A program made the translations under genes and the position numbers. Shown here piece by piece: positions 16,031 through 36,364 of a stretch of 64,000 nt of DNA (within the stretch, counting starts at the first letter, position 1; each line of letters opens with the position of its first letter). The DNA is taken from positions 22,506,001 through 22,570,000 of the forward strand of contig NC_087246.1 of the NCBI RefSeq assembly GCF_037042905.1, in the 5' to 3' direction. This stretch comes from Lytechinus pictus (taxonomy: Eukaryota). Below the pieces are notes generated by a model. That model worked only from the letters and a program-made list of their open reading frames with translations, was not told the origin of the DNA and did not search any database.

Positions 16031-16174
16031 TCACACAAAGTTGTGGTTGGAAAAGTCCCTTATATCGAAACAATGTCATCTTCACTCTTGATATCAAAGA
16101 AATCACACAAAGTTGTGGTTGGAAAAGTCCCTTATATCGAAACAATGTCATCTTCACTCTTGATGTCAAAGAAA
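16031..16174. repeat. 72-bp tandem duplication (2 copies)
   Basis: tcacacaaagttgtggttggaaaagtcccttatatcgaaacaatgtcatcttcactcttgat(a/g)tcaaagaaa x2, one mismatch. Confidence 0.92.
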
Positions 16175-16483
16175 TTCGGGGCTTTTGGGGGAGCGCCAAT
16201 ATGAAGCAAAAACAGGCCTATTGTTTGCTCAACCGCCCACTAGCAGTACAAGGAAATCGCTGTGAGATCAAACTTCGTGCGTTTTTTCCCATCACGATCG
16301 ATATGTGCCCGTTGGATCTCGGCACAGTGTGCACAGTGCAATACCTGATCATTTTTACGAGAGATATATTTTCAATCAGGTGCGTCGGAACTGTTTTTCC
16401 TTCCGATCTTTGACAGGAGTTAGTGTCTGTGGACTATAATATCGGATCAGTCGTTTAACCAGGGAGCTGGAAGGAGATCGGCC

Positions 16484-16546
16484 ATGGCATATCATCTAGA
16501 AACAATTTATTTAGAGAGAGAGCTGATGTTTAAGAACAATGCTGAG
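16484..16546 (+). CDS. Adaptor exon 1 (MAYHLETIYLERELMFKNNAE)
   Basis: Kozak gccATGg; donor GAG|gtaatt, phase 0. Confidence 0.65.
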
Positions 16547-19500
16547 GTAATTCAAAGCTAATATTCATATCAATATCCATATTGCTACCCATACCCCCCC
16601 CCCCCATACCAAAAGTTAGACGTCTGAAAAACAGTTAAATTCATACACATTTTTATAAGATTTTCATTGTGAAATAATTATGTTTCCAGGTCAACAAGAG
16701 TCATTCGTTGTATTTTTTTTCTTTTAAGATAATGCCTTAGGGGGTGGCGCCAAGGTATGTTAATAAATTATAATATTGGGAAAGACAGACTAAATCATGA
16801 CTTGTGATATCATTCCTAGTTCTCCTTAAAATGATAGATATCGTTCTACTGTACAGCCCTTTCAATGCAGTGCTCTTAGATAATATTCTTTCTGGCTTCA
16901 CGCATAAACTATAATTATGTAGGCGTACATTTAACATTTTATGGAGAAATTCCAGCAAGGGTATTCTAAGTCAGTTCCTAGGCAGGCGAAATTGGCTTAC
17001 ACGGTGCACCCTGGTTTGAATCAAAACTGGGACTGCAACATTACATTGACAGTGCATTTTCTTCAACTAATGCAATCTTCATGATCTTGCTTTTAAGTGA
17101 TAAATGGCTTGGTGCAAAATGCAACTTTTTGTCATTGTTTGCACCTGGAATTACCCCCAAAAGGTGCAACGTTAACTTCATAGGGTTTATAGACTCGAGT
17201 GCAGAGATATTGTGCTCTCAAGGTGCAATTACTGGTGGGGATAAATCTGCTCCCTAAACGGTGGCGAAATGTAGGTGCAAAGGGCTTCTTCAATCCTGTC
17301 AATTGCAATATTGCGCCCCAAAAGGAGCTCCGAGTGTTCCATTTGAAGAGTCCTAGATTGCGCTCTTTATCTTAGTGTTTAAACCAATTAATCTAGGAGT
17401 TTATATGGATTTCTCTTTCCTAATATATTTTTAAATAAATTATTGACAAGCAGACATACATTGTTTTGATGCTGGTAAGGCACAGAGAATGATGTGTTGG
17501 AGGGGGGGGGGGAGAAGACAAGATAATCCAAAAGAAAAGGAGACCGTCATCATAGTTAAAATGCATTGAAATCAAACTTTTTCACTTTACAAAATTCGCG
17601 ATCCTCATGGATTTTCATACAGGGCAACGAACAAAGTGAAATTTTAATATGCAGAAAGTAAATTTATCTTAATTATTTACTTAAAAGTAAGTATGTGAGG
17701 TGAGTGAACGAGTGAGTGGGTGCGTGAGTAAGTAAGTAGTACTTAAATAGGAAACTGAATTATTAAAGTAAGTAATACTTGAACTATAAAATAATAAGTA
17801 GTGATCAAATGCGTAAATTACACAAATAGATTGATGATTGCAACCATCGCCAGTGCCGGTCCGTCGAGACTGAGGCCTATAGTTTGCTCTAGTGAATGAG
17901 GTCTAACTATAACTACTCTCTTAAAACAAATCAGTCAAATTGACTAGTAGTCAGCTGGGTGCAACTGATATGACAATCACTGAAAGTCACATTTCTGATA
18001 TATATTCTAGTCAGAAATAGCTCTGTTCTAGTCAAATTCGACTAGAAAATAGTCAAATATGACCAGAATAACAGTTGCACCCGCCTGACCCTCTTAACTA
18101 GTCATTTTTGGCTGATTATTTTGTTTCTAGAGTGTATATACGCTTAAAGTTAAACTTCAATATGGAATAAACTAGTTTGTCTATCTAGCAACATAATGTA
18201 AGGGGAATAAAGAGTGTATATACATGATATAGACGTATACTTTCTCTCAAATAAGTAATCTCTCTCCCCTCTGTTTCTATGTCTGTCTGTCTTCCCCCCC
18301 CCCCCCCCCGTCTTTCTCTTTGCAGCCATCGGTTAAGTATCAACTTGGAAACTGCAAACTCGGTGTCTATTCTGACCATGTCAGAATAGATATCATAGAA
18401 GGCAACAATGCTTATTACCACTACATCTCATCCGTCACAGTTGGCCAATATGAAAGCATATTATGTGTCGAAAGTCAGAATGGCAACACATTCCTCATGT
18501 TCGAACGCAGGTAACAATAACTAATGTCACTGTAAAATACTGTTATAGTCTTAAGGTTAACCAAGGTGAACATGTTACCATAGTAACAGTGTCCAACATC
18601 CATTCAAAATTAAGGTTTGATGGTCAGAATGCAAAGTTATTATAAAAGTATTTGTTGTTTTACGCTTAAGTCACACGGCCATTCACGATAGTTACATATG
18701 CTTACGGATAAAAATCCGTAAGCATCCGCAAGGATCCTTATTATCCGTAAGTATCTGTATCCATCCGTAACTCAATCCGCAGGATCCGCAGACATACGCA
18801 GATCCGCAGCGGGAATTTTGAAAATCTCAATATACGTTATCCATACACAACTCATACGTAAGATGCGTAAACCCATCCGAACAATATGCAAGATACGTAA
18901 CTGACCCTTAAACTTAATTATCATTAAGTAATATTAAAGTTTTGATATATTCAAATGGGCTTATAGGCAAATATTTTTTTTTCTTCAAACATATGGCTTT
19001 TTGAAACTTTTAAGGGGGGTGGAAGTCTTATAATAAGTTAAATCATCTAAAACCAACCTTATTTCTATACAATATTGAAATGAAAATGATTTTTTTTTTA
19101 CCATGATTCACAATTTCCAATCAGGCAATTTAAACGGGAAACATTATTTTTTCATCACCATGACACGTTATCACATATATATCATATTTCTGAACAATAT
19201 TTGTTATCTTTTAACCAAGCACTTAAAATATGTTTCCCATAGCGGCTACTACCGAAACAGAATATTCATTGCAACTTTCTTGGTTAATACTCTGTCATAT
19301 CTGCTATACCTGTCGAATGAAATAAATGTTTGCAAAAATACTCCTAAAATATGTTCTTACCATGCAAGAAGAAACTAGCATGAACAAGGTAACGAAAGGA
19401 TGAAAATTTATATATGTTTTTGTAAAATCTTTAAAGCTCCCATTTTACAAAACAAATGGAGGAACATTGTTTCAAAACCAATTTTTTTTTTTTTGGGGGG

Positions 19501-22500
19501 GGACAAAATTTATGATTCCTTTCTTTATCATAATATCATTGGTGTAAAACAAATACCTATAAAAAGTGTTGGTATATTAAATTCTGATTTGTGTTCCTTT
19601 TGTTAAAAATAGTCTGAAAATATTGCCCATTTATTTTAGGAATGCCCCTTTACTCGTCGATTTTTAGATGATTTTGAAAATTCACTCTAAAAAAATTAAA
19701 TAATGTTGTCTTTTAATGATATTTGCATTTGGCATACCAAATTGAAATTGTTATGCTAAATATTATATATTTTCAACTAGGTGTTTAAATGGTTATTTAT
19801 CGTTTTCATCATGTCAAAATAAATTAAAATATCAGCATGAGATAGAACGCGTTATAAACACGCAACAAAATAAGTTTATTGTTCATCTTGATGGGTCGAG
19901 GCAGATCGAGTTTAATCATTATTTTTTTCTATATTTTGTTTCTATACATGTTTAATATTGTTTGTAATATATCACATGCACTTTGCATTTAATCATATGA
20001 TTTGTCGAGAAATATTGAATAAAGACTTTCTTTGAAAAAAGGGCTGTATTTCTGCAAGCAGTCTGTAAATATAATAATAATAATAACAATATGTCCATTT
20101 ATAAAGCGCATTTACTATGTGCATATTACCCCGGCTGTAGCTGAGCCGCCATATTAATAGGCGCTAAAGCGTTCAAGGAATAAATATATTAAAGCTCATT
20201 ATGGTAAATATCATAAAAACAAAGTATTCTAGCTCTCAGACTTGATGAAATGCGACTGAGACAAATTCCGATCCACATGGGTTGATAAGCGGATAGTGCG
20301 GACGCCAGAGAAGCCGACGAGCGCAGACACGAGCGTAACATATCCGTATCGTCCGTAAGTCATCCGTATGACTTCCAGTCTTCCGTGACATGTGTCAGCG
20401 GGTCAGGGGCAGCGGATGGGCTCATTCGCAGGTTTTACCCGTAACACCCGTAACTACTAGTAATCCATATCGTTCGCAGAATATAGGTAACTTTTGCTCA
20501 ATTTCCGTTATTTTGGGGGGTAAAATTACGCATTATCATTATCCAAATAAAAATATACGCAGAACCGTAACATGGCCTTGCGACTTAAGCAATACGAATC
20601 AAGGTAGCCTGCAGACAGGTAGCCTGTTAAAAGGCTTAATTTTAACCACCATCAAATGCGTTCAATACACAGCTTAATCGATTTTCAGTTTCCAGTAAAG
20701 TGTTCATCGACTTTGTTTATAGGTATGCACAATAATATAGAAACTGTCTTGTATAGTTTCAGAATCTATACATGTAAAAATCCCTAAATAAGAATTTTGC
20801 GGAGAGTTCCATTATATTCATTTTGTGGGTGCAAATCAGCCTAATGGGTTTAGGCTTGCCTCCCAAGCAGGCAATGAGCACAACCATGTATTTATTTGGT
20901 ATAAATTGAATTTCTCGTAATTTTTTCAGCAGGACAGTGAATTTAATACGATTCAAAAAAATAAAGCGAGGGATAATAGAAGATTGTGTCTTGTAATACG
21001 CTTGAAAGTAATAATTATTTACCAATGATTAAGGAAATATTTTGTTTATGCTGTGTGGACATATCATTAAAATACATACAAAGGAGGGGAAGGGGGAGGG
21101 GCTTTGCATATCAGGTAGAGCATTTAATATCAGAAAGAAATGTTAACTTGATATCTGGGCGCCAGGGTTGTAAGGCAGGGATGGAATCTGTGATAACTGA
21201 ATGTACATACTTCTTCTATTTATTGAATTGCTTAATATCAATTATATGTACGTTTTAAATCATTTTTTTCATAAATTGTCATTTACCTTCCAAATGCCTA
21301 ATCACTAAATTATTGCTGGTCAATGTCACTTGATTTTGAAGAAAATAAATAAAGCCATGCATGTAGGCTTAGCCATCACTGAAATAAAAATAGTGTAAAG
21401 TAAACCATCCTTAAAATGACATCAAAGAAGTTATACTTTTGAAGCGAATTGTTTTAAGTGTCACTTTCTAATGATCCGACACAACCCTGTTATAGAACAT
21501 ACAAGTAACAAAAGCGAGCGAGAAAAAAGACACTTTAATGGCGGCTGTAGTGTAACTATAATATGCGACCAATACAGTGCGTATAAAAAAAGGGACACAT
21601 TTGAAGTCTTTAAAATTTTTGTTTCAAATTATGATGTCTATATGATAGGTGCTCTGAAGTCTTATCTTTCAAATGTCATTTTAAAAATTAGTTTCGTTCA
21701 TGCTTGAGCGAACACGGAATGTTTGGGGTTAAAAAGGAGGCTTGCGCCAAAACGGCATAAAATGATAAATATGATGATCGGACTTCTTGCTAATTAGCAG
21801 ACTCCCTCTTAACCTTTTCAATATCTTTGCCATAATTTTCAAATTATGCGGTCAAAATTCATTTTCAAATCTATTTATTTGTTTGAATTGTTCTGTTGCT
21901 TTTTTTCTTTTTGATATGTTCTCTTTTAGCTTTGAATATTCCTTCTTCAAGCAAAAAAAAAAAAAAATGTTCAACCGAAGTATGGGAGAGCATGTATTTT
22001 TTTTTCAAATCCTTTCATTGTGTGCTACAAAGTTTATGGTGACTTTTGAACAGTGCCAGATGGGCGGGGGCTCGGGGATGCTTCCACCCCCCCCCCCTCA
22101 ATAAAAGAAAATCATGACCAAGAAAAAAGTGGAAAGGGAATAAAAGGAAAGATAGAAAGTAAAATATGATATTATTTTCTGAATATTATGTCAAAATCTA
22201 TCACAAAATTTGATATTGTTAATAAAAAAGTGGGAATATTTGCGTGCTCGCTTCGCTCGCTCACAACTTGTTAATACATTTTACCCGATCTGCCATATCT
22301 AGCTCCTTCAAAATTGACTCAATACACCTGTCATTGCCATTGAAAGACATGAATTCCTTCCTGTTTGTCCTGTCAAGCATATAATTAAACTTGGTCAAGG
22401 AATCAATAACCCCTTGAAAAATGGATTCATGTATTTTAAAGGTACCATAACATAATTTGTTTCACATAATAAAAGGATTTGAATAATTGCAAGTTTTCCC

Positions 22501-25500
22501 AATTAATAATGCAAATCTTCTTGCTGGGGTTGACAAAAAGTCTTCTTTTCTTACTTATGAAGGAAAATTAAAAGGTAAAAGAAGTTTAAATGAAAAAATG
22601 TATAATTCAAGTAAATAAATAAATTTGTAAATAAAATTTGACAGCATAATTAATTCGACAATTATGGCACAGATAATGAAAAGGTTAAGAGGAAGTCTGC
22701 TGATAAGGAAGAAGTCTGATCTTCATATTACTCATATCATGCATATTCTGCCATTCTGGCGCAAGCCTCTTTTTGAACCCCCGACAAAAACGTCCCGTGT
22801 TCGCTCAAGCATGAACAAAATTTATTTTTTTAAATTGCATATCAAAGATAAGATTTCAGAGCATCAAAAACATTAACATCAAAATATAGATATCATAATT
22901 TGAAACAATTTTTTATAGACTTTTCAAAACTGTCACTTTTTATACGCACTGTATTTAGAAGTAGTAACCTCTTTAAATTTTGTACGAGAGAGAACGCAGA
23001 GTGAGCTAAAATAAATTTACTAATGTGGCAGAATTTTTTGATAGAATAAAAGATGATAGAAGTGATATGCCTATACATTATTGTATATTGGCTTGTAAGG
23101 TATTTAATTGATATTTTCAATAATACTTTTATGTGCAGAATGTGAATCTATTTAGGCAACTTAAGAAATGATAATCATTCAAATGCAAAATATAAATTAT
23201 GATCATGATAATTAATTGCAGTTTGATTTGTCATTTGATTTCCTAAATTATTTTGATTATTTCATGAATTCGTACCAATCTGCAGTTCATCTGATACATT
23301 ATTATTCAACATCATCAGATTTCATAATGTAGATAAGACTTTAAAGATTTAGAATTGGTTGACTTTTACATTCGATTTTTTATACCATAAATAATGCAAG
23401 TGAACAAAGCAAACGTATTACAAGACATCATCATTGAAGAAACACAAGGCACAAAACATAACCTTGTTTTATCGTTGTTTTGGGGAAGAATTATTATTTG
23501 CCGCTGTATCTCAAAATAGTTTTTATTAATTATCCGAAACATGAAAAGGCAAACTTGGTGCTTTCGATGATTGATAACAGAAACCAAACTTTATGGTGTA
23601 TCTGGACTATAAACCGAAATTAAAACAAACTTTTTCTGAGTGTTTATACAAAAGGATTATTATTTCACCTTATATAGGTTTCAGTCCAGCAAAACGTCAA
23701 ATACCTTACACATTGGCGATGTTTGATGTTTGATATTTCTGGTGCAATCATGCAATAAGCTGATAAGACATTATCATTTATTTTCATGGAAGAACTTCCT
23801 CATTTGGAGCCGGTGAAAAGCAAAGAAGAAGTCGGGGTGCATGCTGGAAGTGGGGCAGATCAAATTATGTGAAATGGGGTTGAGGACGAGGAAGATTTTG
23901 TGCATGGCCTCTAGGCTGGCCTCAAGACCAACAACACTGGATTTCGAACAGTAACTACATTGGAACCAATATCCATGCTGTTCTTAACCTATCCCTTTAA
24001 TATATTAAGAAGTTGAAACCCGATGACCGTTGATGAACACTAGCGTACCTACGGGGGGGGGGCAGAGGGGGCAGACTGCCCCCCTGACGAGTCACAATCC
24101 ATGCAAGGGACATATCCCTGCCCCCCTGACGAGTCTTGAAGACCTTTTTTTTTGCTTGTCAATTTTTTTGTCTCTGGTACGAAATCCTTTATTTGTGGTT
24201 GAAGACCTTTATTTTTGTTTTTGTCAAATTTTTTGGAGAACGAATTTCCCCCCCCCCCCCTGTTGAAAATCCTAGGTACGCCACTGTTGATGAATAATTA
24301 GGACTTGTGTCCTTTTGTCATATCTCATTGAATAGAAGACACGCACATTTTGAAAACACGCGCACATCCACGTGATATATGCCAGAGATTATGTGATATT
24401 GAACTTTGATTTAATGATGGCTTTCTTTTGGTATGAACGAAAAACATAATCACCCACGTCGATAGAAAACACATTTCTCCTACGATACAAATTCATTTCT
24501 TTTGTTAATCGTAATCAATCTAGAAAAAGAAAGAGACATAAATTTGTTTCCCCATATTTATTTCTGCTTGATTTATTTTCAAATCCATCCAACCTTTTCA
24601 ATTGATTCAGATGGCAAACGTCGGCTATGGGTGATTTATCATCGAAAGCGTAAAAACACAAATTACAAAGAAATGTATATCTTTTCAATTTTTTTCATTT
24701 AAAATACGAATATAGGCCTATCTCATACATATTTTTTTTTTCCAAAGCCGTTGAAATCACATTCTTCGTCATTATCGTTTGATTGAAATACGTGCCCTAA
24801 CCACATTTTTGTTTTAACTTGACCGAGATCATATAAATAGACTTGTTCCCCATCCCCGCAGAAGCAAAAGAAGGAAACGTGACAAAGAGTCGTCATTGAT
24901 TTATACGGGATATTTTCTGATTTATTTTAACCGCTGAGATTGAGGAAGTATATCTTGCGTGGAATTTTAGAATGGAAACATTCCACATCAGAGTATAGGA
25001 AGCGAAAAAACAGTTTGCTCGCGTCATGAACTAAACTACATGAATGTTAATTCTTACAATATTTAATACATGGAAAAAGATAGTCAATCATACCTTGCAG
25101 CATTGCTTTGTTGAAGCAGACCGTATGAGATTTTTTTTTCAGTTTAATAAAATAGGAGGAATTTCAATGAAAAGGAAGCAGATAGTGATAGTTTGGAGGA
25201 AAACATCTTTTAGAATTAAAAATGTATCAAATTTGATAGTTTTCGGTATACACCTGCAGGAACGATTTTTTTTTATATGGATGGTTGTCCTCCGTTTATT
25301 TTTAATGATCATATAATAGCTGTCATCCTTTTCAAACTCGGTCTGTATCTATTATATCTTTATGTCATAGAGACACTTGTCACAATTTATATTCCATACT
25401 TGCTATAGTTTGGGATTTGCGTAGTCTTTGTGATATCATTCTTTTAAAAAGTATAGCTTTCTTATTCTTGGATGATCCCTTTTAAACTTTTTACAACTCC

Positions 25501-28500
25501 GTTCATTTAAAAAAAAATCTTCTTTTTCATCTTTTACATGAATTATTTAAGCTGCAGAAAGCTTTAATATTGTGTCATTCGAATAATTCATAATTACGAT
25601 TGCATAACCAATAAAAAAGAAATGGTTTTGGTCAATTATGATCTGTTCTTTGACTTGATTTTGGTTGATTTGATCTGAATAGATAGATTTAGTTAAAATG
25701 AATTGATCTAGGTTGCTCTTAATTCACGATTTACATTTTTATAGCACATCGAATTTTTATCTCATGATATCTTTTTATATCAAGTCTGATTTTATAATTA
25801 TTTTTCTGAGCTGATGGACTCTCTTCCATGAAGGTTAACTAATCCCAAAGTCGTGCTATGTAAACTTAGCCATATGCAAGAATATATTTTTTAAGACACA
25901 AAATTACAGTTGGCCTAATAAATGTTACTAATTCTGTAACTCACATCTTCCAAAACAGAAACAAGTGTTTGATAAAAAAAAAAAACGCTAGTGTACACTG
26001 TTAGAAAGTGTATTATTAAAATAAAAGAAGTTCCTGCAGCAGAGTCTCGAGAACACCTGTAATCTTGCCAGATTGCATAATCTTACATTATATCATGTAA
26101 AATTGGTATTTGGTGTATGGAACCTTCAAATTTCCTTAAATAAAACACCCTTTTCCCCTTTTTAACAGACCTGTTCTGTTAAATTGCAGAAAAATTCATG
26201 TTTTATGAATTTACAGAATGATTCTGTTATTGCTTTCTGCAAAATCTTTTTTTTTCCTGTAAAATCAGGGTTTTTTTAACAGTGTATAATATGATATTGA
26301 ATATGCCTTTTATTGTCATTTCATATTATTTAGAGCTGATCGTGAAGAATGGTATTCTACAATCAAACAGCTTCAGGTTGGTAAGATACCTAGCTTTCCT
26401 ACCAAACGTGAATCTCTGCCGGCTCGTCTTGATGATACCACCACCAGGTCAATAGACAGGTCACAGGCATCAGTATCATCACCATCTACTCTTCAACAAA
26501 TCTTTAAAGAACAGCTCGTAAGATTATCATTCTTTCAATATCCCGATTCAGTCCCAGTAGTTAATCATTAATCGACTCGGTTATTGTTTGTAAGGAAGAC
26601 AATGATGACAATATTTTTCCGCCCCCCCCCCCATCCCCACTGGCGAAAGCTGGATCCGCCGCTGGCAATAGCGAGTAGACCCTGATTTATCTCGAGTGAT
26701 ATGATATTTGTATTGTCTGATATAAATTGAAATGATGGATTATTTGTTAAACCCTATACAGATAGAGATTCCTTTTACCTATTTCACCTTCAAAATGTAT
26801 AGAGTTCTATCGAAAAAATATTTGGAATTGCATCAATGCACCTATTATATATTACGTCATGATAGGAAATGTTGTTATACACTTAGGCTCTTTAAAGCTA
26901 ACAAAAAATCTGCCCCTAAAATTATGACTTTTGATCAAAATACCTGCATTAAGGAACAATAACATACATCGTTCTCATGTAGCGAAAAGAAAAAAAAAGT
27001 TATATGTATATAGTACAGGTATCTTATGTAGTCTAGATGAATGAACTAAAATATTGTAATCATATTGCACTGCATTTATTAGCCCCCATAAACTGGGCCC
27101 TGGAAACGTTTTTTTTTTCAACAGGGTTGCTGATTGAAATATGACAAGCAAAAAAAAATACACAAAAAAGGAATTCACTCCAAGAAGAATGTCATTTTTC
27201 GTTAAATTACTGCCATTTAGCAGACCTATCACATTTCCAGGGGGTGCTGCCTGTGGTGAATAATACACACAGCACCCCCCCCCCCTCCCCGAAAATCATG
27301 GGGGTGCTTCAGCATTATACCCAGCACCCCTGCTGCTTCCCAGAGCCATGCCCATGAAAATAATTACCTGTAGTCGGCAGGGGAATCATCGAGACATTCG
27401 AAATGGTTTAAACATTATTGCTTATCTCCTTGAACTCATTTTAATAGGAAAGGGATATAATGCTGAAGAAACCAGAGCTGAATAAAGGTAAGAAAATATG
27501 AAGCATGCTTTTGATATTTCATTGCAATCAATTTTCTTAGGTTTTAATGTGGTTCTATACAGGTGTCGAATCCCCGCATATTTTGTGAGACGTCATCATC
27601 ATATTCTTCTTTCTCAACGTGATATGCCCGATCAGTGGCGGACCGTGACCCGGAGGAGACAAAGCATTGGGGGGGGGGGGGAGGCACAGCATTGTTCACA
27701 AACAAGCAGTGCCCCTCCAATGCTTTGTCTCCTCCGGGTCACGGTCCGCTACTGTGCCCGATCAACAACAAACAAGTATTTTATCTTCTATCATGATATA
27801 TACATGATCACTGCAACACATTATTCCATTCCTTTAACAGTGGCAATGGAACAAAATAATATAATGGTTTTTTTTCCGTCCAATGTATCAAATTAAGCTG
27901 TAAAAATACATCGCGATTCGCGAGGTGTACGCCTATGAAATTTGTTATAGAATGATCAAATTCATCTGTGTAGGCTTTAATACATGTTTATCTTCCATGT
28001 TCAAATTTGTACTTTTCGTCATGACTTAATATAAAAAGTCTTGTGTTGTAATCATCATTATCACCACCCTGGCGGCCGTTTCATAAAGCTTTTCGTAAGC
28101 TAAGAGCGACTTTATGAACGACTGGTGATCCTTTCTTACGCGCTAAACCATCGCCAATTCAATATACCGCTTATACCGCAAGAAAGGATCACCGGTCGTT
28201 CTTAAAGTCGCTCTTAACTTACGAACAGCTTTATGAAACACCCACCAGTGGTCGTACGCAGAGGGGGCAGTCCCCCTCCCCCCGTAATTTTGCAAACCTA
28301 CATTTTTTTTACTGAAAATATTTACAAAATTTACCAAATGTGTGCACGAAATCCTTCAATTTCACTTTAAAAAATGCAAAAGCACCCCGATGACAAGCCC
28401 GGTCGCGTCGCTCCCTCACATTCGAGTTTCATCGATTTTTTTTAGCGTCTTGCCCCCCCCCCAGAAAAAAAAATCTGCGTACAGCCTTGATTACCACCAT

Positions 28501-31500
28501 CATTCATTATTATCATCATTATAATGGTTATTATTTTTCTCCGTGACAGGATCAGGATCCTATATTAATGTGGACTATAACAGAGCCCTACAGAATTCCA
28601 AGGAATCCTATAACATGTTTAATGCGTTACATGTAAGTTTATATTTTCCCCCTTTATATACATTTTATAACTAACAAAGTCGTAAGGGGTGAATTAGGCT
28701 AAATTATTCATGCTTTTTTTTTTTTAGTTATCCTTACTTTTTAATCAGGATTTTTATGATCTATATGTAAAAGTAATTAGGGCCTCACATATTTTGGGCC
28801 CTGTCGGGTTAATTTGGTCAAGCTGCTTTTGTGAACATCAGTGTCCTGTCCAATAATATACGTCATTTTATACATTCAACCAAGGATTCACTTAATTCAT
28901 TCAAACATTATGCAACTAATTACTCTTGACTTAGGTGATAGCCTTTAAACTGTCCATATTTTTCTATGCAACCACGAATCTGTAAAAATTAAGTGGGCAA
29001 ATTTGCATTGAGAAAATACAACGATATCGAAAGTAAAGTTTATATAGTAACAAGTTCCTCTTTCAGACCTGAACTCGGGCAGCATATTAACACAGTTGAA
29101 CATAAAATGAATCACAAAGCAGAGTTATACTTATGCCCATAGAAGTGCATGCATTCCAACCACATTTAATTGAAAACATCAGTGTTGCATGACTGTCATT
29201 ATATGAACAATTTATGTTTATTTATCGACCCGTATATAGGTAGTCCCAAACTAAACCTTTACTCTCAATCTAAAAATACCTGTAATACTGCATGGCCGAC
29301 ACACGCGAACCGTGTGCTAATTGGAACCGGCAAAGGAGATTTTTAGATATTGTAGAACTTTTATTTCAAACCCACTGAGAATATTTATGATGTTCCCTTG
29401 ATCTCTTATATTATACCCGTTATGATTATCAATTGGTCCTGTAAGTCATAGCTATTTAGAGACCCGAACTAACGTGACCAATGTATATCTGATCTTTCGT
29501 CTTCTTATTCCTTATCCCTCCTTTTTTGGTCTCTTGTTCTTGTTTAAATTTACAACGAAAGGGGCATCAGAATGCAGCAGTAGAGGATGATGTTTACGAG
29601 GATGTACCCGAGGGAGATGATCCTCCTGATGGCCTCATCGAGGAGGATGTATACGAAGACTTGGAGGGCGACTCAAACGCGATAGAGGAAGACATTTATG
29701 ACGATCTAGACAATGGAGATGATTTTTACGAGGACAGTGCTGTACCTGGACAGCCCGGAGCATCGGGATGGAGCTCTGAAGCGGGGCCCCCACCACCACC
29801 CTTACCGCCAAGACCAATGCCACCACGGGTAAATAGACACTATATGAAATAAGAAAGGGGGGGGGGTAAACGTTGCACCTTAAAAATTCTAGCCCTATGC
29901 TACACTGAGAGCATCTTCAAAGGTGAACCTCGCACCTGAAAAGGTGCATCTTGCACCTTTCTGATCGTGGAGCCCCATAAGAGGTGTAACATCGGACCTT
30001 TGATATAACAAAGGTGCTAAATTGTACCTGTAACATGTGTAAGGCGCTCCCTTGCAGGGTGGTATTTCTAAGGGTGTTATTTTGAGCCATTTTTCTTGGA
30101 ATATTCTGTGGTATTGAGAATGACCATTGGACATTGATAACTGAAGTTTAGAACCATTGCATTATTTTCAATTGGCTCGTTTTTAATAGTCATGTTAGTT
30201 ATCTTTGTTTTTATTGCGCAAAATTTCGTTAGTGGTTTTCAAAGTGGTAGGTCCTGTGTCTTTGGTTCAAAACAATTAACATAATTGTTTCATGGTAGTC
30301 CACTGAAATTTTCAAGAAACGACGTGAAATCTGACGAATAATTGAAAATGGTTTTTATCATTTAATAAAATAACCCACCGAGACGAATCTCTAATCTCTT
30401 TACAATCTCTACATTCTTAAAAACATGTTGGTCAAACTTACAAAAGAAATGGAATCACCGCGCTGATGGTGAGTAGTAGAAGCCTCTCCTTTGATATCTA
30501 AACAACCATGCAATCTTAAACATGTAAAAAAAACAGTAATTAATGTCTTATGTATATATTTATGTATTGAACAATATAACTTTTATACCACGATAGCAGA
30601 TGGTTGCTGAGGAGGAGGATCTCTACGAAATGCCAGAATCTGATGTTCCTCCACCGATTCCTGCTCGACCTCCGGCAGCCAGCAATAGCAATCACTCCGA
30701 CCAAAATACAACAGGAAAGCAGTCAGGAAGGATGTTTTCACGTCAGTCAAAGAAAAAACCAAAACAAACGCAGAACAAACCCCCAACCAAGGTATGACAA
30801 AACGATAAAAAGATGACGGCATATATAGAGAAAATCCATGTTCAAACTCTTCCTGATTTTTTTTATTTCAGTTTGATTTTCATCCTGTGAACTGAAGATG
30901 TTTGGGATCTATTGGCTCTGTAGACATGATAGACGGATACAAGCCCAGTTTTATTGAAACGTGATCTATAACCAATAGTGATAATTTAATTGAAAAAGTA
31001 AATTGTTAGACTTATAAAATAAAAAAAAATGAATAGCTGAATTCATAAAGAAATTAGGAATAAAAAATTGATATGAGTTATAACTAAAAAAAATGTGTAG
31101 TATTACATTGTAAAGAGGATTTCCTTCCCTTTTCCTTCTTTTGCTTTTAAACCATGGTGGTGAATTTCAAGAGCACCGCAAGTACCATCATTTTTTTCCT
31201 CTCCTTTCAACTTCCTCTTGAAATTAGTCAAGGGTTTCCCCAAATTCAAGTGTGAAATCGATAGAGTGGGCCCTTATCGGACATAAATGGTAGAGTACTT
31301 AGCGCATTGAGATAAAACAAATTGAGCGGACGTCACATTACGTGTGTGACAAACTTCCTTTCGAAAATGTCCCGATCGAGCGAAGCGAGTGGAAAAAATG
31401 TTTTGAACTATTGAAATAAAAATCTAATATTGTGATAAATTTTTACATATTCATTCAAAAATGGCATGATATTTTGACCCATTTCATTTCTTCTTCTTTT

Positions 31501-31535
31501 CTTCTTTTTCTTTTTCTTCTTCTCCTCCTTCTCTC

Positions 31536-31566
<31 letters not shown>

Positions 31567-34500
31567 TTTTTCTTCTTCTATTTCTTCTTCTTTTCCTGAT
31601 TTCCCTTCTTGATCTTGGAACGTGGCCCCTAATCAAGCACTCCATATCTGTACGCCAGTGTCTGACATCAATATCTTAAAGAATAAATGGTGTTTCTTTC
31701 TGACAGATACCAAGCATACCTACAGATGGTGATGGGAATGTACCGACGGCCCATCCAACTGTTGGTCAAAGTCTAGCAGATGAACTTGCCACGAAGTTAA
31801 GAGCTCGAGCAGCGACTCTACCAAACAGACCACATTCACCAAACCAAATCCCACAAAGCAGTAGCAAGGTAACCAAATCAAAAACAAATTTAGACGTCGG
31901 CAGTGTGTCAAAATATGATTAATGATGTTCTGCTTCAAAATTGGAACGCCTTATTTCCATAAGAATTAGGCAGGCCTACAGTTTGTCTGATGAGTAGGCG
32001 TCAGCATGGTCAGTCAATAGAGCTGAATGGCATTTCCTCTATATTGTCCCCACAAATGAAGTGATTATTCATATTGCAAAGCGTAAAATTATTATTAGAG
32101 ACATTTATCATTTATGTGTTCATGTTGTTCCTAAAAAGTTGTTGATTCTACACGTGCTCGAAGTCAGAAATATGGATTTTATTCTGTAATCATGTTCACA
32201 GGCTTTTCGTTTTTATCCAGTCAGATTTCGTTTTTCATTATTTTTATTTTCCAACTCTTTGGTGTCAACATGGTTAAGGGGTACGCAGTGAACCTATTGT
32301 TCGAGGAGGGTGATCTATTGTTCCATCCCCTATGACGTCACGGATTTACGCCAATGTGCACTGTGTCCTGCTTACATTAATTTATTTATTTATATTATCT
32401 TTCCATCTTTGTTTAACCCTTTAGAAGCCGGTAAATCTACCGAATGATTTTGAAAAGATGCAGCTGAGAAGTCCAACAGACAGACACAGTAATAACCCAA
32501 GGCCAAGCAGCAGTGAGATCTCGGATGAACTAGCAAGAAAGCTTGAGAAGAGGAGCAGTGCCATCTCGTCCGACTCTACAGGTTCGGGTTTGGATGGACA
32601 GACATCGTGCAAACAAACGTGTAATACAAATGACAACCGCAGAGGATCGGTGCCATCTTTCGAACAGCACGTAGGACCTACAAGTCCTCCGTGGAATCAG
32701 CATCAGGATCAAACCAGTCAACCTCCTCAGACTCTACCCAAAAAGGTCGGTTTCGTAGTAATGTTTTTTTTCATGTTCTTTGGCTTTAAATGCTCATCAA
32801 CATGGTCGCTGAAGGCCTTCATAATAAGTTTCCCGACTTGCAGTTAGATCATCAGCTCCTACTCTTCCTTGATATTTCACACAGCTTGAGTTGCTCTTAG
32901 TGTATTTCTATTAGGTGAACGCCAATACTTTATATTCCTGCCTGACTTGTTCAAATCGGATTTATGTTTGTTTGAAGTCAAACTACGCTTTTCTGATCCC
33001 GTCATCTTCATTACTGACATTTACTACTTCTGTGAAGAAAAAAATTATTAAAAAACTTATGATTTTAATTTGAATATTTTTTAAAACTTATGTAGTGATT
33101 GTGGCCAAAGAACATAGATTAAGGTCATTTATCTCGGATAACGCAATTGAACAACGAAAAGGTATAACATAATGCCAAATAAAAACTCAATTTTCTCACA
33201 TCTAAACTTTTATTAAATAATCCACCTTTGGACAAGAACCAACTAGTTTAGCGTAAAGAGCTCTGTTTATGGACAAAAATCGGAAGCATCATAATTATGG
33301 ACATCATCATTAGGTTATTTGCATTTCTTCATTGTTATTTGACAGAAAGCCATCGTTCCCCCGCCGACCCACTCAAGGCCCGATAAACCTCAATCGAAGT
33401 TACCTATTGATGATCAGGTGAAGGCACTCAAAAGCCCGCCACCAACGCCAGCAAAGAAACCCGTTAAGCCACCATCAAGTGATGAAATATGTAAGATTCA
33501 TTCATATTCTATTTTTTGACACTGTTTGATGATCTGCTTCTCTAACCTTGAATTAATTCCCGCCAGTTCAAAGAGCTCTTGGACGATCGTCATTTATTCC
33601 GCTTATCATTGGTAGATATGGACGTAGTAGAAGACAAATTCCAGAATAATGGAGAAATGATGATAAAGAAGGAGGAAGACGGAGATGGGGGGAAGAAGGA
33701 TAAGGTTAAGAAGGAGAAGAAGAAGAAGAAGGGGGTGGAGGAGGAGTAGGGTGAGAAGAAGGGGGAGAAGAAGAAGAAGAAGGAGAAGAAGAAGAAGAAG
33801 AGAATGAAGAACATGAACAAGAAAAACAGAAACACAAAGAACAAGAAGAAAAAGAAGATGGGGAAAAGAGTTGAAGCACACAACATGCATAAGTAAAGAA
33901 GGATTGTACACTACGAAACACTGATTTACATTAATTTGAATTTCCTTTCAATTTTCAGACGAGGATACAGTAGTTGTACAGCCGAAGCCAAAACGGAAAC
34001 CAAGCTTGCCAAGGTATAACTTCCCATTTATTTATCAAAATTCTCCGGTAATCGTGCAACTAGTGTTTGATTTCATCATTCAATTATTAAAAATTTCATT
34101 GTGTTTTCGCTTGATGAAACGTAACTTTGTATCAGATATTCCAGACAATACTTCTATGAATACAATTCTTGCATGTCTCTTGAACTGTGTGAGAAGTAAA
34201 TGTTCTCTGGCGTAAAGCAAAAAAAAAACATCATAAACCAAGGATAAAAGAAGACATAGAACGGAAAGGAAAGGTAAAGACTGAAATATGGTATGATTTG
34301 TTATGTATATAAAATATTTGTTCAAATCTTTCATAAATATAAGATTTCATTTTAAATGGGTCAAAATCTTCTCTCGCTCACGACTCGCCACACTTTTTGC
34401 CCCCTCAAAGTTATTATAGTTTATTACACTACTATAGCTAGTCCTACTAATGATGAATGCTGTCCTTTTTTCTCTCCCTGTATAGTCCGGTTGGTGGCGG

Positions 34501-36148
34501 AGTCGAGTTAGATGTTCGGATTCCTCTTCATGCGATACAGGATCAGATAGCCGGATCGGTTATTTTCAAAGATCAGTCCGATAATGTGGTGTAAGTTAAT
34601 GTACCTCAACAATGAAAATCTAATTCAATGAAAAAGATGGTGATTTTATGATAATATGGATATGACAACAGCGCCATGATCTACAAAAATATTCAAAAAA
34701 TATGTATTTTTATTATTATATTTTCTTTGTTGCTCATGTTCTCACTTTCAGCCGATTACCAAACACCAAAGGAAATTGAAATAAACGTGTATAAATATTG
34801 TAACGTTCAATTTCAATTCAATTCAATTTAAATAATCATTCATTTTCTACCATTTTTCAATATAAATCATAAAAATTCTTTGACATAAAAATATTAATAT
34901 ATTTATATGTTAACAGAAGAAGACGTAGTTATATGAAGGCAAAGCTTGTGACGGGATACACCTGTAATACAAATACGATGTTCTTATATTGCAGGTTTTT
35001 AGTGTCAGTGAAATGCATCAACTTAATGACACTAAATTTACAAAATTATTTGAATCAAAGAACTAAATGGAATCACCCTTGTTCATTCTATTTTTTTTTT
35101 GCAAATTGGAATGGAAGGAGTAAGAAAATATCTTACCAAGACTAAACATTTTCAGTGTTCTTCCCAGTTGTCTATTTATTTGTCTGAAAGTTAGTTTTCA
35201 TATATGTTCCTTATATTTCTTGTGTTCATGCAGTTTCAGCCTTTATCCTAACGCTTATTTTTATTTTTTACCTTTATACTCTGTTTTATAGGATTGAAAG
35301 AAGTAACTTACCAGATTACTTGCATGTTGGAGACCAAGTCTTAAAGATTGGAGACATTGATGTTCGCGACTCCTCTGCCATGTTTGTTACAGAATGCTGG
35401 AAAAGGGTCAGCGAGAGCCAGGTAGGCCCAGTATTCTCTACTCTGGTCCTAGATAAATAAAAGCAGCTAAAATCCATATAAATATTGATTTTATCCATCA
35501 GCGATAAGAATAGTTTTGATTACTATGTATCTTATTGTTCAACATCATTTCTTAAGAAAATCGCAATGTGCCTTTTTTGTTTATTTTATTCGACTTGTAT
35601 GTTTAGTCTTTTCACTCTTTGAATTTTTATCCTGATCGTAAGATAAACTCTGCAGGTCATTTAAAACAAAGTTTATTATCATAATTTCTGTCAGAATTTC
35701 TGTATACCGTATATCATTGTCAAACATTGAAATTGACAATTTACAGTAAGATTTTTAATGTGTGTATATATAGACCTATAAAAAAGGACATATCACTTTC
35801 GGGTGTCGAGTGCCGTACTACAGATCTCATGAATTAAAAAAAATCAATGGAATGCATAATAATGTTATTTTTCTACTTTCACTCGCTCTTTCTATCACTG
35901 CACAATTAATCTTATATTTTATTACAAGGTTTTGTTTTAAGTGTAAAAATGAATGCCAGTGAAAAAAAACATGGTTTTTTTTTTGGGGGGAGGGGGTCAT
36001 GTTTTGCTGAAAACAATAGTGCTGATAGCATTATTTAAAACAGTTATTCTGAAAAAAACATGATTTTAAGAAAGTTGACGTATGTAATTGGTGACATTCT
36101 TATATTATTTTTTTGTCATAATAGGTCCGGGTAAGAATTTTACGATAG
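16484..36148 (+). CDS. PH domain / acidic Tyr-motif / Pro-rich / PDZ-like adaptor, about 651 aa, 14 exons (possibly PLEKHS1-like architecture)
   Basis: gccATGg start. Exons 16484-16546, 18326-18510, 26334-26517, 27448-27487, 28550-28632, 29562-29828, 30600(or 30597)-30791, 31707-31868, 32425-32745, 33346-33490, 33959-34013, 34486-34590, 35292-35421, 36125-36148; all GT-AG, phases join into one 1956-nt ORF. PH C-helix FERRADREEWYSTIKQL; PDZ core LHVGDQVLKIGDIDVRD...VRVRILR*. Confidence 0.8.
18326..18510 (+). CDS. Adaptor exon 2 (PH beta strands)
   Basis: tctttctctttgcag|...CAG|gtaaca, phase 0 to 2. Confidence 0.8.
18664..20590. mobile_element. About 1.9-kb degenerate non-autonomous TIR element with ATCCGTA-like subterminal repeats
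   Basis: Ends gcttaagtcacacggccat / atggccttgcgacttaagc; many atccg(t/c)a units at 18700-18900 and 20340-20390. Confidence 0.6.
21575..22951. mobile_element. Tc1/mariner-like MITE (TA TSD) with a nested poly-G MITE near 22050-22330
   Basis: ta|CAGTGCGTATAAAAA ... TTTTTATACGCACTG|ta; long arms (gttcatgcttgagcgaacacgg / ccgtgttcgctcaagcatgaac). Confidence 0.85.
24038..24286 (-). mobile_element. Same MITE family as 6078-6418, inverted
   Basis: CACTAGCGTACCTA...TAGGTACGCCACTG; TSD TTGATGAA on both sides. Confidence 0.88.
25996..26284. mobile_element. TA-flanked MITE
   Basis: ta|CACTGTTAGAAA ... TTTTAACAGTG|ta. Confidence 0.65.
26334..26517 (+). CDS. Adaptor exon 3 (ADREEWYSTIKQLQ...QQIFKEQL)
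   Basis: atttag|...CTC|gtaaga, phase 2 to 0; conserved PH Trp helix. Confidence 0.8.
27448..27487 (+). CDS. Adaptor exon 4, 40-nt small exon (ERDIMLKKPELNK)
   Basis: ttttaatag|...AAG|gtaaga, phase 0 to 1; needed to keep the frame. Confidence 0.7.
27633..27754. mobile_element. Second copy of the hairpin MITE
   Basis: Same arms; 8-bp TSD TGCCCGAT at 27625-27632 and 27755-27762. Confidence 0.9.
28069..28248. mobile_element. Palindromic MITE (Harbinger-like)
   Basis: ctggcggccgtttcataaagct...taagagcgacttta / taaagtcgctctta...agctttatgaaacacccaccag. Confidence 0.7.
28550..28632 (+). CDS. Adaptor exon 5 (GSGSYINVDYNRALQNSKESYNMFNALH)
   Basis: tttttctccgtgacag|...|gtaagt, phase 1 to 0. Confidence 0.78.
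29562..29828 (+). CDS. Adaptor exon 6 (YEDV, YEDL, YDDL, YEDS motifs; PPPPPLPPRP)
   Basis: Long pyrimidine tract then aag| (alternative cag| at 29570); CGG|gtaaat; phase 0-0. Confidence 0.88.
30600..30791 (+). CDS. Adaptor exon 7 (EEEDLYEMPESDVPPPIPARPP...)
   Basis: tagcag NAGNAG acceptor; AAG|gtatga; phase 0-0. Confidence 0.85.
31489..31610. repeat. (TTC)n-rich pyrimidine tract
   Basis: Visible low-complexity run. Confidence 0.85.
31707..31868 (+). CDS. Adaptor exon 8 (IPSIPTDG...SLADELATKLRAR...SSSK)
   Basis: tttctttctgacag|...AAG|gtaacc; phase 0-0. Confidence 0.85.
32425..32745 (+). CDS. Adaptor exon 9 (KPVNLP...ISDELARKLEKR...TLPKK)
   Basis: ccctttag|...AAG|gtcggt; phase 0-0. Confidence 0.82.
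33346..33490 (+). CDS. Adaptor exon 10 (KAIVPPPTH...PPPTPAKKP...DEI)
   Basis: tttgacag|...|gtaaga; phase 0 to 1. Confidence 0.85.
33660..33870. repeat. (GAA)n-rich purine tract
   Basis: Visible low-complexity run. Confidence 0.9.
33959..34013 (+). CDS. Adaptor exon 11 (YEDTVVVQPKPKRKPSLP)
   Basis: ttttcag|...AAG|gtataa; phase 1 to 2. Confidence 0.8.
34486..34590 (+). CDS. Adaptor exon 12 (PVGGGVELDVRIPL...VIFKDQSDNV), start of PDZ-like domain
   Basis: tctctccctgtatag|...|gtaagt; phase 2 to 2. Confidence 0.85.
35292..35421 (+). CDS. Adaptor exon 13 (PDZ core LHVGDQVLKIGDIDVRD)
   Basis: ttttatag|...CAG|gtaggc; phase 2 to 0. Confidence 0.88.
36125..36148 (+). CDS. Adaptor terminal coding exon (VRVRILR*)
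   Basis: tttttttgtcataatag| acceptor; supplies the final PDZ beta strand, then TAG. Confidence 0.75.
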   Translation, partial: VRVRILR

Positions 36149-36364
36149 TGGTCCGGAATACATATGACCAGCCATCATGCAGCTCTTCACAGGCAGTACT
36201 GAAGAAGTATCTTCAATCACACAAACTTCTATCTACCTTCCCACAACCCCTCTTTCTCCCCTCTATTCTCTCTCTTTCTCTTTCTCTCTCTCTCGTATTC
36301 ATCGATATAATATATCATAAAAAGGATCGATAAATTATATCTGACTCTTTATCCCTCTATCTGG

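Follow-up and report, generated by a model that had tools for sequence, protein, structure and literature searches.

The locus examined here raises two questions: whether 14 small exons scattered over nearly 20 kb of sea urchin DNA belong to a single gene, and what kind of protein such a gene would encode. Docking adaptors determine which effectors are engaged by a tyrosine kinase. The exons lie on the + strand at positions 16484-36148 of the window, the whole 64,000-nucleotide stretch that was analyzed, from Lytechinus pictus, an urchin used in the laboratory; all coordinates below are window positions on that strand. The gene is genuine and transcribed. Its product is probably a tyrosine-kinase docking adaptor that begins with a PH-like domain and ends with a divergent PDZ domain.

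Results

The gene model was rebuilt from the sequence. Splicing of the 14 exons yields a 651-aa open reading frame that ends in a TAG stop codon at 36146-36148; each of the 13 introns has GT-AG ends and the phases are compatible throughout. The translation is 100% identical to RefSeq protein XP_063969486.1 ("atrophin-1-like isoform X2", Lytechinus pictus), which was retrieved with exon 9 as the query. The 14-exon, in-phase, 651-residue model of the original prediction is therefore correct, with zero mismatches. The same identity contradicts its description of the gene as hidden. The gene is already a public model, its L. variegatus and S. purpuratus orthologs are annotated as well, and it is merely misnamed, with its domains unrecognized. 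The RefSeq names differ across the three species: atrophin-1-like, proteoglycan 4-like and WW domain-binding protein 11-like.

The first three exons cover the predicted PH-like domain. Exon 1 (16484-16546) runs from the start codon onward and encodes aa 1-21, the N-terminal portion of the domain; its placement is based on the identity of its translation to XP_063969486.1, an ortholog mRNA contig that shares the N-terminus, and a colinear tblastn alignment. Exon 2 (18326-18510, aa 22-83) encodes the putative beta-sandwich core, based on AF2 strands at residues 30-80 with pLDDT 70-80; the exon gives an E-value of 1.8e-33 in a genome search. Exon 3 (26334-26517, aa 83-144) encodes the predicted C-terminal helix (83-97) with the invariant W89, followed downstream of the helix by the conserved motifs PSFPTKRESLPA and SSPSTLQQIFK. 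Exon 4 (27448-27487, aa 145-158) is a 40-nt micro-exon that matches XP_063969486.1 exactly and whose sequence is kept in S. purpuratus.

The linker continues through exon 5 (28550-28632, aa 158-185), which encodes a conserved GSGSY(I/V)N block with the sole YxN (Grb2-type) site, Y162. Exon 6 (29562-29828, aa 186-274) encodes the acidic tyrosine cluster Y197, Y216, Y231 and Y241 and a PPPPPLPPRP SH3-ligand stretch. Exon 7 (30600-30791, aa 275-338) encodes Y283 (YEMP) and PPIPAR. In isoform X1, one Gln is added through a second acceptor, at 30597, which is the one used by the RNA contigs. A further isoform, X3, lacks the PH part. Exons 8 (31707-31868, aa 339-392) and 9 (32425-32745, aa 393-499) encode disordered sequence with the first DEL(A)xKL helical motif and a second, DELARKL, respectively; both junctions of exon 8 are found in contigs. 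Exon 10 (33346-33490, aa 500-548) contains KSPPPTPAKKPVKPP and ends within the codon for Y548, which is divided by the intron. Exon 11 (33959-34013, aa 548-566) encodes YEDT and a basic stretch; contigs reveal an allele with a 12-nt insertion after 33974, which is also present in an older public protein model.

The last three exons encode the putative PDZ domain. Exon 12 (34486-34590, aa 566-601; E 3.1e-15) would supply its first half. Exon 13 (35292-35421, aa 601-644) encodes the PDZ core, with LHVGDQVLKIGDIDV and the second helix, and the coding part of exon 14 (36125-36148) provides aa 645-651, the predicted final strand, and the TAG codon. The 3' UTR runs on to at least 36225.

The stretch 24611-24630, considered as a further exon, was discarded because it is only 20 nt long and in the wrong phase. 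A two-exon bridge between the members of the initial exon set was also tried and nothing fitted; in the true model, exon 3 is longer, exon 6 begins at an earlier acceptor and the 40-nt micro-exon is included. A Pfam scan of the intronic open reading frames matched no family.

Evidence for transcription comes from spliced contigs of 2134-2141 nt, derived from three runs of one study; the RNA label of the runs is a guess, and the contigs themselves are spliced. One further run gave no contig. Seven of the 13 predicted junctions, those joining exons 7 to 14, are exact GT-AG junctions in these contigs. An eighth (exon 6/7) has indirect support: the contig bases immediately upstream of exon 7, left unaligned, correspond to the 3' end of exon 6. 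One contig carries approximately 914 nt upstream of exon 7, a length that fits exons 1-6 (822 nt) together with a 5' UTR. In a Strongylocentrotus-type urchin the whole open reading frame, from the PH end to the PDZ end, lies on a single 2.2-kb mRNA contig that has the same N-terminus as exon 1 and an in-frame stop codon upstream.

The N-terminus (aa 1-98) is predicted, with moderate confidence, to adopt a PH-like fold. The AF2 model contains six strands followed by a C-terminal helix, with strands at residues 30-80 and the helix at 83-97; mean pLDDT is 63, rising to about 70-80 for residues 30-100. PH-like folds account for all of the best 50 Foldseek matches in the PDB, the best 30 in Swiss-Prot and the best 50 VIA matches. 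The best VIA match has a Z-score of 8.7 and an rmsd of 2.8 A over 89 residues. W89, within an (E/D)EWY motif, is invariant across all orthologs and corresponds to EAW in the paralog described below. For the divergent N-terminal PH domain that had been claimed, the model and the structural matches support a PH-like fold, but its sequence support is marginal. Pfam PF00169 does not match the L. pictus N-terminus and scores two orthologs at 13.5 and 13.9 bits (E about 0.1) against a cut-off of 25.1. Alignment with PH exons of the same genome by hhalign is marginal (P 0.016), and the two best matches of the PH profile in the PDB, both to the ARHGAP21 PH domain, are non-significant (E 0.26-0.39). 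The K-Xn-(K/R)-X-R phosphoinositide-binding motif is absent from the beta1-beta2 region (pLDDT < 50), where basic residues are few and unconserved across species and in the paralog. Since this basic motif of lipid-binding PH domains is missing and the basic residues present are unconserved, the description of the protein as membrane-recruited is not supported.

The C-terminus (about aa 566-651) is best interpreted as a divergent PDZ domain whose homology is established over its second half. Pfam PDZ and PDZ_2 gave E-values of 0.006-0.05 in three of three orthologs, with scores for PF00595 and PF13180 of 14-17 bits, under the gathering cut-offs of 23.2 and 27. Single exons produced sub-threshold PDZ matches only, and the full-length protein had no Pfam match. 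A search of the PDB with a C-terminal profile (hmmsearch) reached an E-value of 4.1e-7, and 40 of the 43 matches were PDZ domains; a full-length profile gained nothing further in the PDB. Comparison by hhalign with 11 canonical PDZ exons from the same genome gave 95% probability (P 2.4e-8), with only the second half aligning, compared to P 0.44 for the control alignment of the PDZ region with PH. The last exon of the paralog alone matches Pfam PDZ (E 9e-4, 20.0 bits), and in a language-model comparison the last 90 residues have PDZ clusters as neighbors. The match extends to the last residue, in agreement with the prediction of a PDZ-like domain ending exactly at the C-terminus. The AF2 model of this region, built from a three-sequence alignment, is not usable (mean pLDDT 39.9).

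It is the part of the urchin domain between the fourth and the last strand, second helix included and with the pattern LxxGDQ(I/V)LxIxxxDV, that aligns with canonical PDZ domains such as those of InaD-like, PSD-95 (PDZ3) and PALS1. Unlike them, the urchin domain falls under the Pfam cut-off and has a divergent first half, whose register is tentative; the candidate carboxylate-binding loop, in place of GLGF, is the non-canonical IAGS, its counterpart being LAGS in S. purpuratus and MLGD in the paralog. Class I PDZ domains have His at position 1 of the second helix, where the urchin domain aligns Ala.

The linker between the two predicted domains comprises about 465 disordered residues, with 18 PxxP motifs and a proline content of 14%. 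All seven tyrosine motifs of the original prediction are present (YINV 162, YEDV 197, YEDL 216, YDDL 231, YEDS 241, YEMP 283 and YEDT 548), as are four PxxPx[R/K] sites, at 102, 264, 292 and 531. The six acidic tyrosine motifs, which conform to (D/E)(D/E)x(V/I/L/F)-Y-(D/E)(D/E/M)x, the single YxN and the four PxxPx[R/K] sites are all kept between Lytechinus and Strongylocentrotus. Of the nine tyrosines in the disordered region, L. pictus and S. purpuratus share eight, at a regional identity of 49%, which is only modestly above chance (P about 0.02). YxxM, the PI3K p85 site, does not occur in XP_063969486.1. The c-Src kinase domain and SH2 domain prefer an aliphatic residue at -1, an acidic residue at +1 and V/L at +3, and Grb2 prefers Asn at +2 (PMC10065799). 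By motif comparison with these preferences, the six acidic tyrosine motifs match c-Src, and the YxN at Y162 matches Grb2 (PMC10065799).

A paralog with the same architecture is located on the same chromosome, at a distance of approximately 30 Mb. It retains both ends and the intron phase, including an intron at exon 12 of identical position and phase; its linker is unrelated. Word-based homolog searches, which could miss distant relatives, found echinoid proteins only. An exhaustive search with exon 9 as the query likewise found only echinoid homologs, and it was unable to reach distant relatives because exon 9 is disordered. The literature searched held nothing on LOC100893831 or XP_003724180, no paper found names the gene, and none describes a protein in which a PH domain at the N-terminus is combined with a PDZ domain at the C-terminus.

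Discussion

On balance, we lean toward the view that this gene encodes a modular, cytoplasmic docking protein, expressed and conserved in sea urchins, with a PH-like head, a phosphotyrosine/SH3 linker and a PDZ tail. A function as a tyrosine-kinase scaffold is suggested by its motifs, and phosphorylation, all binding partners and subcellular location are likewise predictions from sequence. In the proposed mechanism, the PDZ domain, and perhaps also the PH-like domain, would anchor the protein, either at the tail of a membrane receptor or at a cortical scaffold. A Src-family-type kinase would then phosphorylate the six acidic tyrosine motifs and the single YxN. The resulting phosphotyrosines may draw SH2 proteins of the Src-family, Nck or Crk type and Grb2, and in parallel the four PxxPx[R/K] sites may bind SH3 proteins.

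The same layout could instead operate independently of phosphotyrosine, with the protein serving as a scaffold in the cortex, the cytoskeleton or trafficking, its prolines binding SH3, WW, EVH1 or profilin partners and its acidic Yxx-hydrophobic motifs providing unphosphorylated sorting or acidic-aromatic contacts. Such a scaffold would be in keeping with the N-terminal domain being structurally nearest to protein-binding, non-lipid PH-like domains (SHARPIN, CARMIL and Exo84), with the abundance of proline and PxxP motifs in the linker, and with the fit of YEDV, YEDL and YDDL to the Yxx-hydrophobic pattern. However, it is in membrane-protein tails that Yxx-hydrophobic sorting signals work, and inspection by eye finds no obvious hydrophobic segment in the 651 residues. 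Moreover, an aliphatic residue at -1 with acidic flanks at six sites, together with a conserved YxN, is a classic kinase/SH2 signature. We consider a phosphotyrosine-independent scaffold unlikely, and a docking adaptor remains the preferred reading.

Comparison with known adaptors bears on whether the docking architecture is new. SLP-76/BLNK and ADAP characteristically have an acidic tyrosine cluster of the YEDL, YDDL or YDDV kind, then proline-rich SH3 ligands, then a folded C-terminal domain. The urchin protein shares all three features. However, SLP-76 and BLNK end in an SH2 domain and ADAP in an SH3-like domain, whereas the C-terminal domain of the urchin protein matches PDZ and not SH2. 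The N-termini of those proteins are SAM or unstructured, in contrast to the predicted PH-like domain here, and no homology to them was detected. With Gab, IRS, Dok and PLEKHS1 the urchin protein has in common an N-terminal PH-type module, a long disordered region, several SH2 tyrosine motifs and proline-rich SH3 ligands. Unlike them, it is devoid of YxxM, a PTB domain and any evident PIP3-binding motif, and its C-terminus is a putative PDZ domain, which those families lack. No sequence homology to these families was found by searches that either were word-limited or had a disordered exon as the query. The published account of PLEKHS1 presents it as a Gab-related adaptor that Src-family kinases phosphorylate and that has a PH domain and YxxM, but no PDZ domain (bioRxiv 10.1101/2023.05.18.541123). 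The kinship with PLEKHS1 raised by the original prediction is therefore unsupported: compared by description, the urchin protein is the reverse with respect to PDZ and YxxM, and PLEKHS1 is not among the best 30 Swiss-Prot structural matches.

PH and PDZ domains also occur in one chain in ARHGAP21/23, the syntrophins and CNK, and syntrophin PH domains are among the structural matches of the urchin PH-like domain. These proteins differ in order and context (PDZ-PH-RhoGAP, a PDZ inserted in a split PH, and SAM-CRIC-PDZ-PH, respectively), and none has a 465-residue tyrosine/proline docking linker or a PDZ domain at the extreme C-terminus. The urchin protein could nonetheless be a very divergent ortholog of a characterized family, for example a Gab/PLEKHS1-type PH adaptor or a PH and PDZ protein of the ARHGAP21/syntrophin kind, in which case the architecture is not new. 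The ARHGAP21 matches of the PH profile point in this direction, as do whole-protein language-model neighbors (0.79-0.86) that include arthropod "PH domain-containing" and mollusc, chordate and fly PH and PDZ clusters, and the word-limited searches may have missed distant relatives. Yet all such scores are under the reliability lines of the tools themselves, ARHGAP21 and syntrophin carry other domains in a different order, YxxM is absent, the homologs found are echinoid only, and no paper found names the gene. Divergent orthology thus seems improbable, somewhat more so than the phosphotyrosine-independent scaffold.

It is very improbable that the terminal domains are over-read and that the protein is essentially low-complexity and disordered, as the RefSeq names suggest: the full-length protein has no Pfam match, the AF2 model of the PDZ region is poor and the PH sequence signal is marginal, but the two ends are the best conserved parts (76% identity for the PDZ region versus 49% for the linker between genera), the paralog keeps both ends and the intron phase despite its unrelated linker, the PDZ profile signal is specific relative to controls, and the structural matches are uniformly PH-like.

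Finally, standard annotation appears to have overlooked both predicted folded domains, and three species received three names drawn from low-complexity sequence. The arrangement from PH-like to PDZ is not known from classical docking proteins. Since the entire function is read from motifs, the gain is modest. We tentatively suggest, as a possibility still open to considerable doubt, that this gene and its paralog constitute an echinoderm-restricted docking family with a new architecture, consisting of a PH-like domain, a Src-type phosphotyrosine cluster, SH3 ligands and a C-terminal PDZ domain that fixes the multi-site tyrosine-kinase platform to a specific receptor C-terminal tail or cortical scaffold. 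If so, a PH-like head, a Src-type phosphotyrosine/SH3 linker and a PDZ tail would represent a new mode of anchoring such a platform, and a kinase platform fixed by PDZ would be wiring undescribed for the Gab, IRS, Dok and SLP-76 adaptors. The family may then have a role in Src-family signaling at fertilization or in coelomocytes.

Results

The gene at 16484-36148 on the + strand is real, expressed and already annotated, although misnamed. It lies in AT-rich animal DNA (35.5% G+C in the window). Two N runs (149 and 430 bases, at 44608-44756 and 46024-46453) are both downstream of it. Stop-free segments combined with splice-site scans recovered most exons and left 26.3-29.6 kb ambiguous. When exon 9 (32425-32745) was used as the query in an exhaustive protein search, the RefSeq protein XP_063969486.1 (P0001) was retrieved, identical across the entire exon. 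The exon model was then fixed by placing P0001 on the window sequence: fourteen exons, 13 of 13 introns GT-AG, every phase fitting, and a 651-aa translation with zero mismatches. The original prediction had the coordinates, the 14 exons and the 651 aa exactly right. The gene is not hidden, as had been claimed, since P0001 is already public as Lytechinus pictus "atrophin-1-like isoform X2". An older RefSeq model (P0007) is called "WW domain-binding protein 11-like", the L. variegatus ortholog (88% identical) "proteoglycan 4-like", and the S. purpuratus ortholog (about 51-56% identical) "uncharacterized protein LOC100893831". Precomputed Pfam domains are absent for the L. pictus isoforms, the older model and both orthologs, and a literature search on the locus and the accession returned no paper naming either.

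Isoform X1 has 652 aa; its acceptor at 30597, three bases upstream, adds one Gln. The two acceptors form a tandem of the CAG-CAG type (30597-30600), and the 651-aa model takes 30600. A predicted isoform X3 (P0006, 572 aa) lacks the PH-like core; its first two residues come from a different first exon, and the shared sequence starts in exon 3. At 16031-16175, some 300 bp before the start codon, a 72-bp unit is repeated twice with 98% identity. Introns 7 and 10 contain long (TTC)n and (AAG)n tracts (31488-31592 and 33708-33858), which give rise to long Lys/Glu/Arg-rich and Phe/Leu/Ser-rich pseudo-ORFs on both strands.

Four runs of one study contain 12-15% of sampled words from 26300-36200, approximately the exon fraction there. 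Reads of these runs were mapped to 30250-36240, skipping the (TTC)n/(AAG)n tracts. Three of the four runs yielded spliced contigs of 2134-2141 nt whose joints, all GT..AG, fall exactly at the seven predicted junctions of exons 7-14. The acceptor used is 30597, and the contigs therefore represent isoform X1. An unaligned stretch just upstream of exon 7 matches the 3'-terminal 30 bases of exon 6, so that exons 6-14 are observed directly on one L. pictus mRNA. One contig carries ~914 nt upstream of exon 7, a length consistent with a short 5' UTR and exons 1-6 (822 nt); the placement of exons 1-6 on that mRNA rests on this length and on the RefSeq model. A 2211-nt Logan contig (L001, SRR31798690) from another urchin, of Strongylocentrotus type, contains a complete orthologous ORF, from MAY to RILR, preceded by an in-frame stop and colinear in translation with the window exons. 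In this relative, therefore, a single mRNA spans both the PH and the PDZ ends. The RNA contigs also differ from the assembly at seven single bases in exons 7-9 (30686, 31743, 31746, 31809, 32593-32594 and 32675), which are probably allelic. A 12-nt in-frame insertion allele at 33974 in exon 11, adding four residues, is carried by P0007 and by contigs from two of the runs, and is absent from the assembly.

The case for an N-terminal PH domain is weak by sequence and better by fold. Pfam PH matched two orthologs at E about 0.1 and the L. pictus N-terminus not at all, hhalign against PH gave P 0.016, and the best PDB sequence matches of the N-terminal profile were to the ARHGAP21 PH domain (E 0.26-0.39). 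The AF2 model has six strands and a C-terminal helix, which contains the invariant Trp (W89), with pLDDT about 70-80 across residues 30-100. A PH-like fold is found in all of the top 50 PDB rows from Foldseek, the top 30 Swiss-Prot rows and the top 50 VIA rows, the best structural match being the SHARPIN PH domain (Z 8.7, rmsd 2.8 A, 89 residues). The domain thus likely adopts a PH-like fold, and the divergent PH domain proposed originally stands to that extent. Lipid binding, and with it the description "membrane-recruited", is not accepted because prediction is poor in the beta1-beta2 region, whose basic residues show no conservation.

The C-terminal domain is PDZ-like, and the match extends to the final residue, as had been predicted. 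With Pfam PDZ and PDZ_2, each of the three orthologs scored under the cut-off, at E 0.006-0.05. A three-sequence profile searched against solved structures gave PDZ chains as 27 of 28 hits. In a search of the genome, this profile identified a paralogous exon on the same chromosome, about 30 Mb away; with this exon added, the best E fell to 4.1e-7 and PDZ accounted for 40 of 43 hits. The paralog's last exon on its own matches Pfam PDZ at E 9e-4. Local hhalign against 11 canonical PDZ domains of this genome, each contained in one exon, gave 95% probability (P 2.4e-8), compared with P 0.44 for control PH exons. Confident alignment covers only residues ~610-650, from the fourth strand through the last; the first half diverges and has an uncertain register, and the AF2 model is unusable (pLDDT 40). 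IAGS in the gene and MLGD in the paralog are taken as a putative remnant of the GLGF loop.

The paralog occupies 52291839-52325980 (about 52.292-52.326 Mb) on the minus strand of chromosome G000:C2 (loci L008, L011, L009 and L012). Its single PDZ end is preceded by two PH-core-like exons (52311281-52311096 and 52325980-52325789, minus strand), which could represent alternative exons, a tandem PH or the decayed remains of a duplicate. Also present are an exon encoding the matching helix (RSDMEAW), a short exon with proline and tyrosine (PYEEV) and a complete PDZ-like end (37% identity over 85 residues). In the PDZ-like end, intron position and phase equal those of the exon 12/13 junction, and the last intron of the gene is missing. 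The paralog linker is shorter and unrelated in sequence, while both end domains are retained. This pattern favours the ends being real modules and an architecture older than the duplication.

Discussion

The disordered linker (aa 101-565; Pro 14%, Ser 11%) is 49% identical between L. pictus and S. purpuratus; eight of its nine tyrosines keep their position and the ninth is one residue off. Six are preceded by acidic residues and V/I/L/F at -1, with an acidic +1 and frequently V or L at +3. One tyrosine is in a YxN motif, YxxM is absent from the protein's tyrosine motifs, and four PxxPx[R/K] sites are conserved. Peptide-display data (PMC10065799) show c-Src kinase favouring Ile/Leu/Val at -1 with Asp/Glu/Ser at +1, the SH2 domain of c-Src favouring Asp/Glu at +1 with Ile/Val/Leu/Met at +3, and a requirement of Grb2 for Asn at +2. 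Given this match, the linker tyrosines read as candidate Src-type substrate and SH2-docking sites.

A docking-adaptor role is suggested by these sequence features. In working principle the gene product would resemble the Gab, IRS, Dok and PLEKHS1 docking proteins and the SLP-76 and BLNK adaptors; limited searches for distant relatives found no homology to any of the six. The proposed relationship to PLEKHS1, compared by description only, is unsupported, since the published description of that protein gives a PH domain and YxxM but no PDZ (bioRxiv 10.1101/2023.05.18.541123). Language-model neighbours (0.79-0.86), which serve as leads only, include PH and PH+PDZ clusters from arthropods, molluscs and chordates, and a remote ortholog may exist in other phyla. 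Unlike the compared families, the gene product lacks their YxxM, PTB or SH2 and adds a terminal PDZ. Among these docking adaptors, a PH-like head, a putative docking linker and a terminal PDZ would be a new arrangement.
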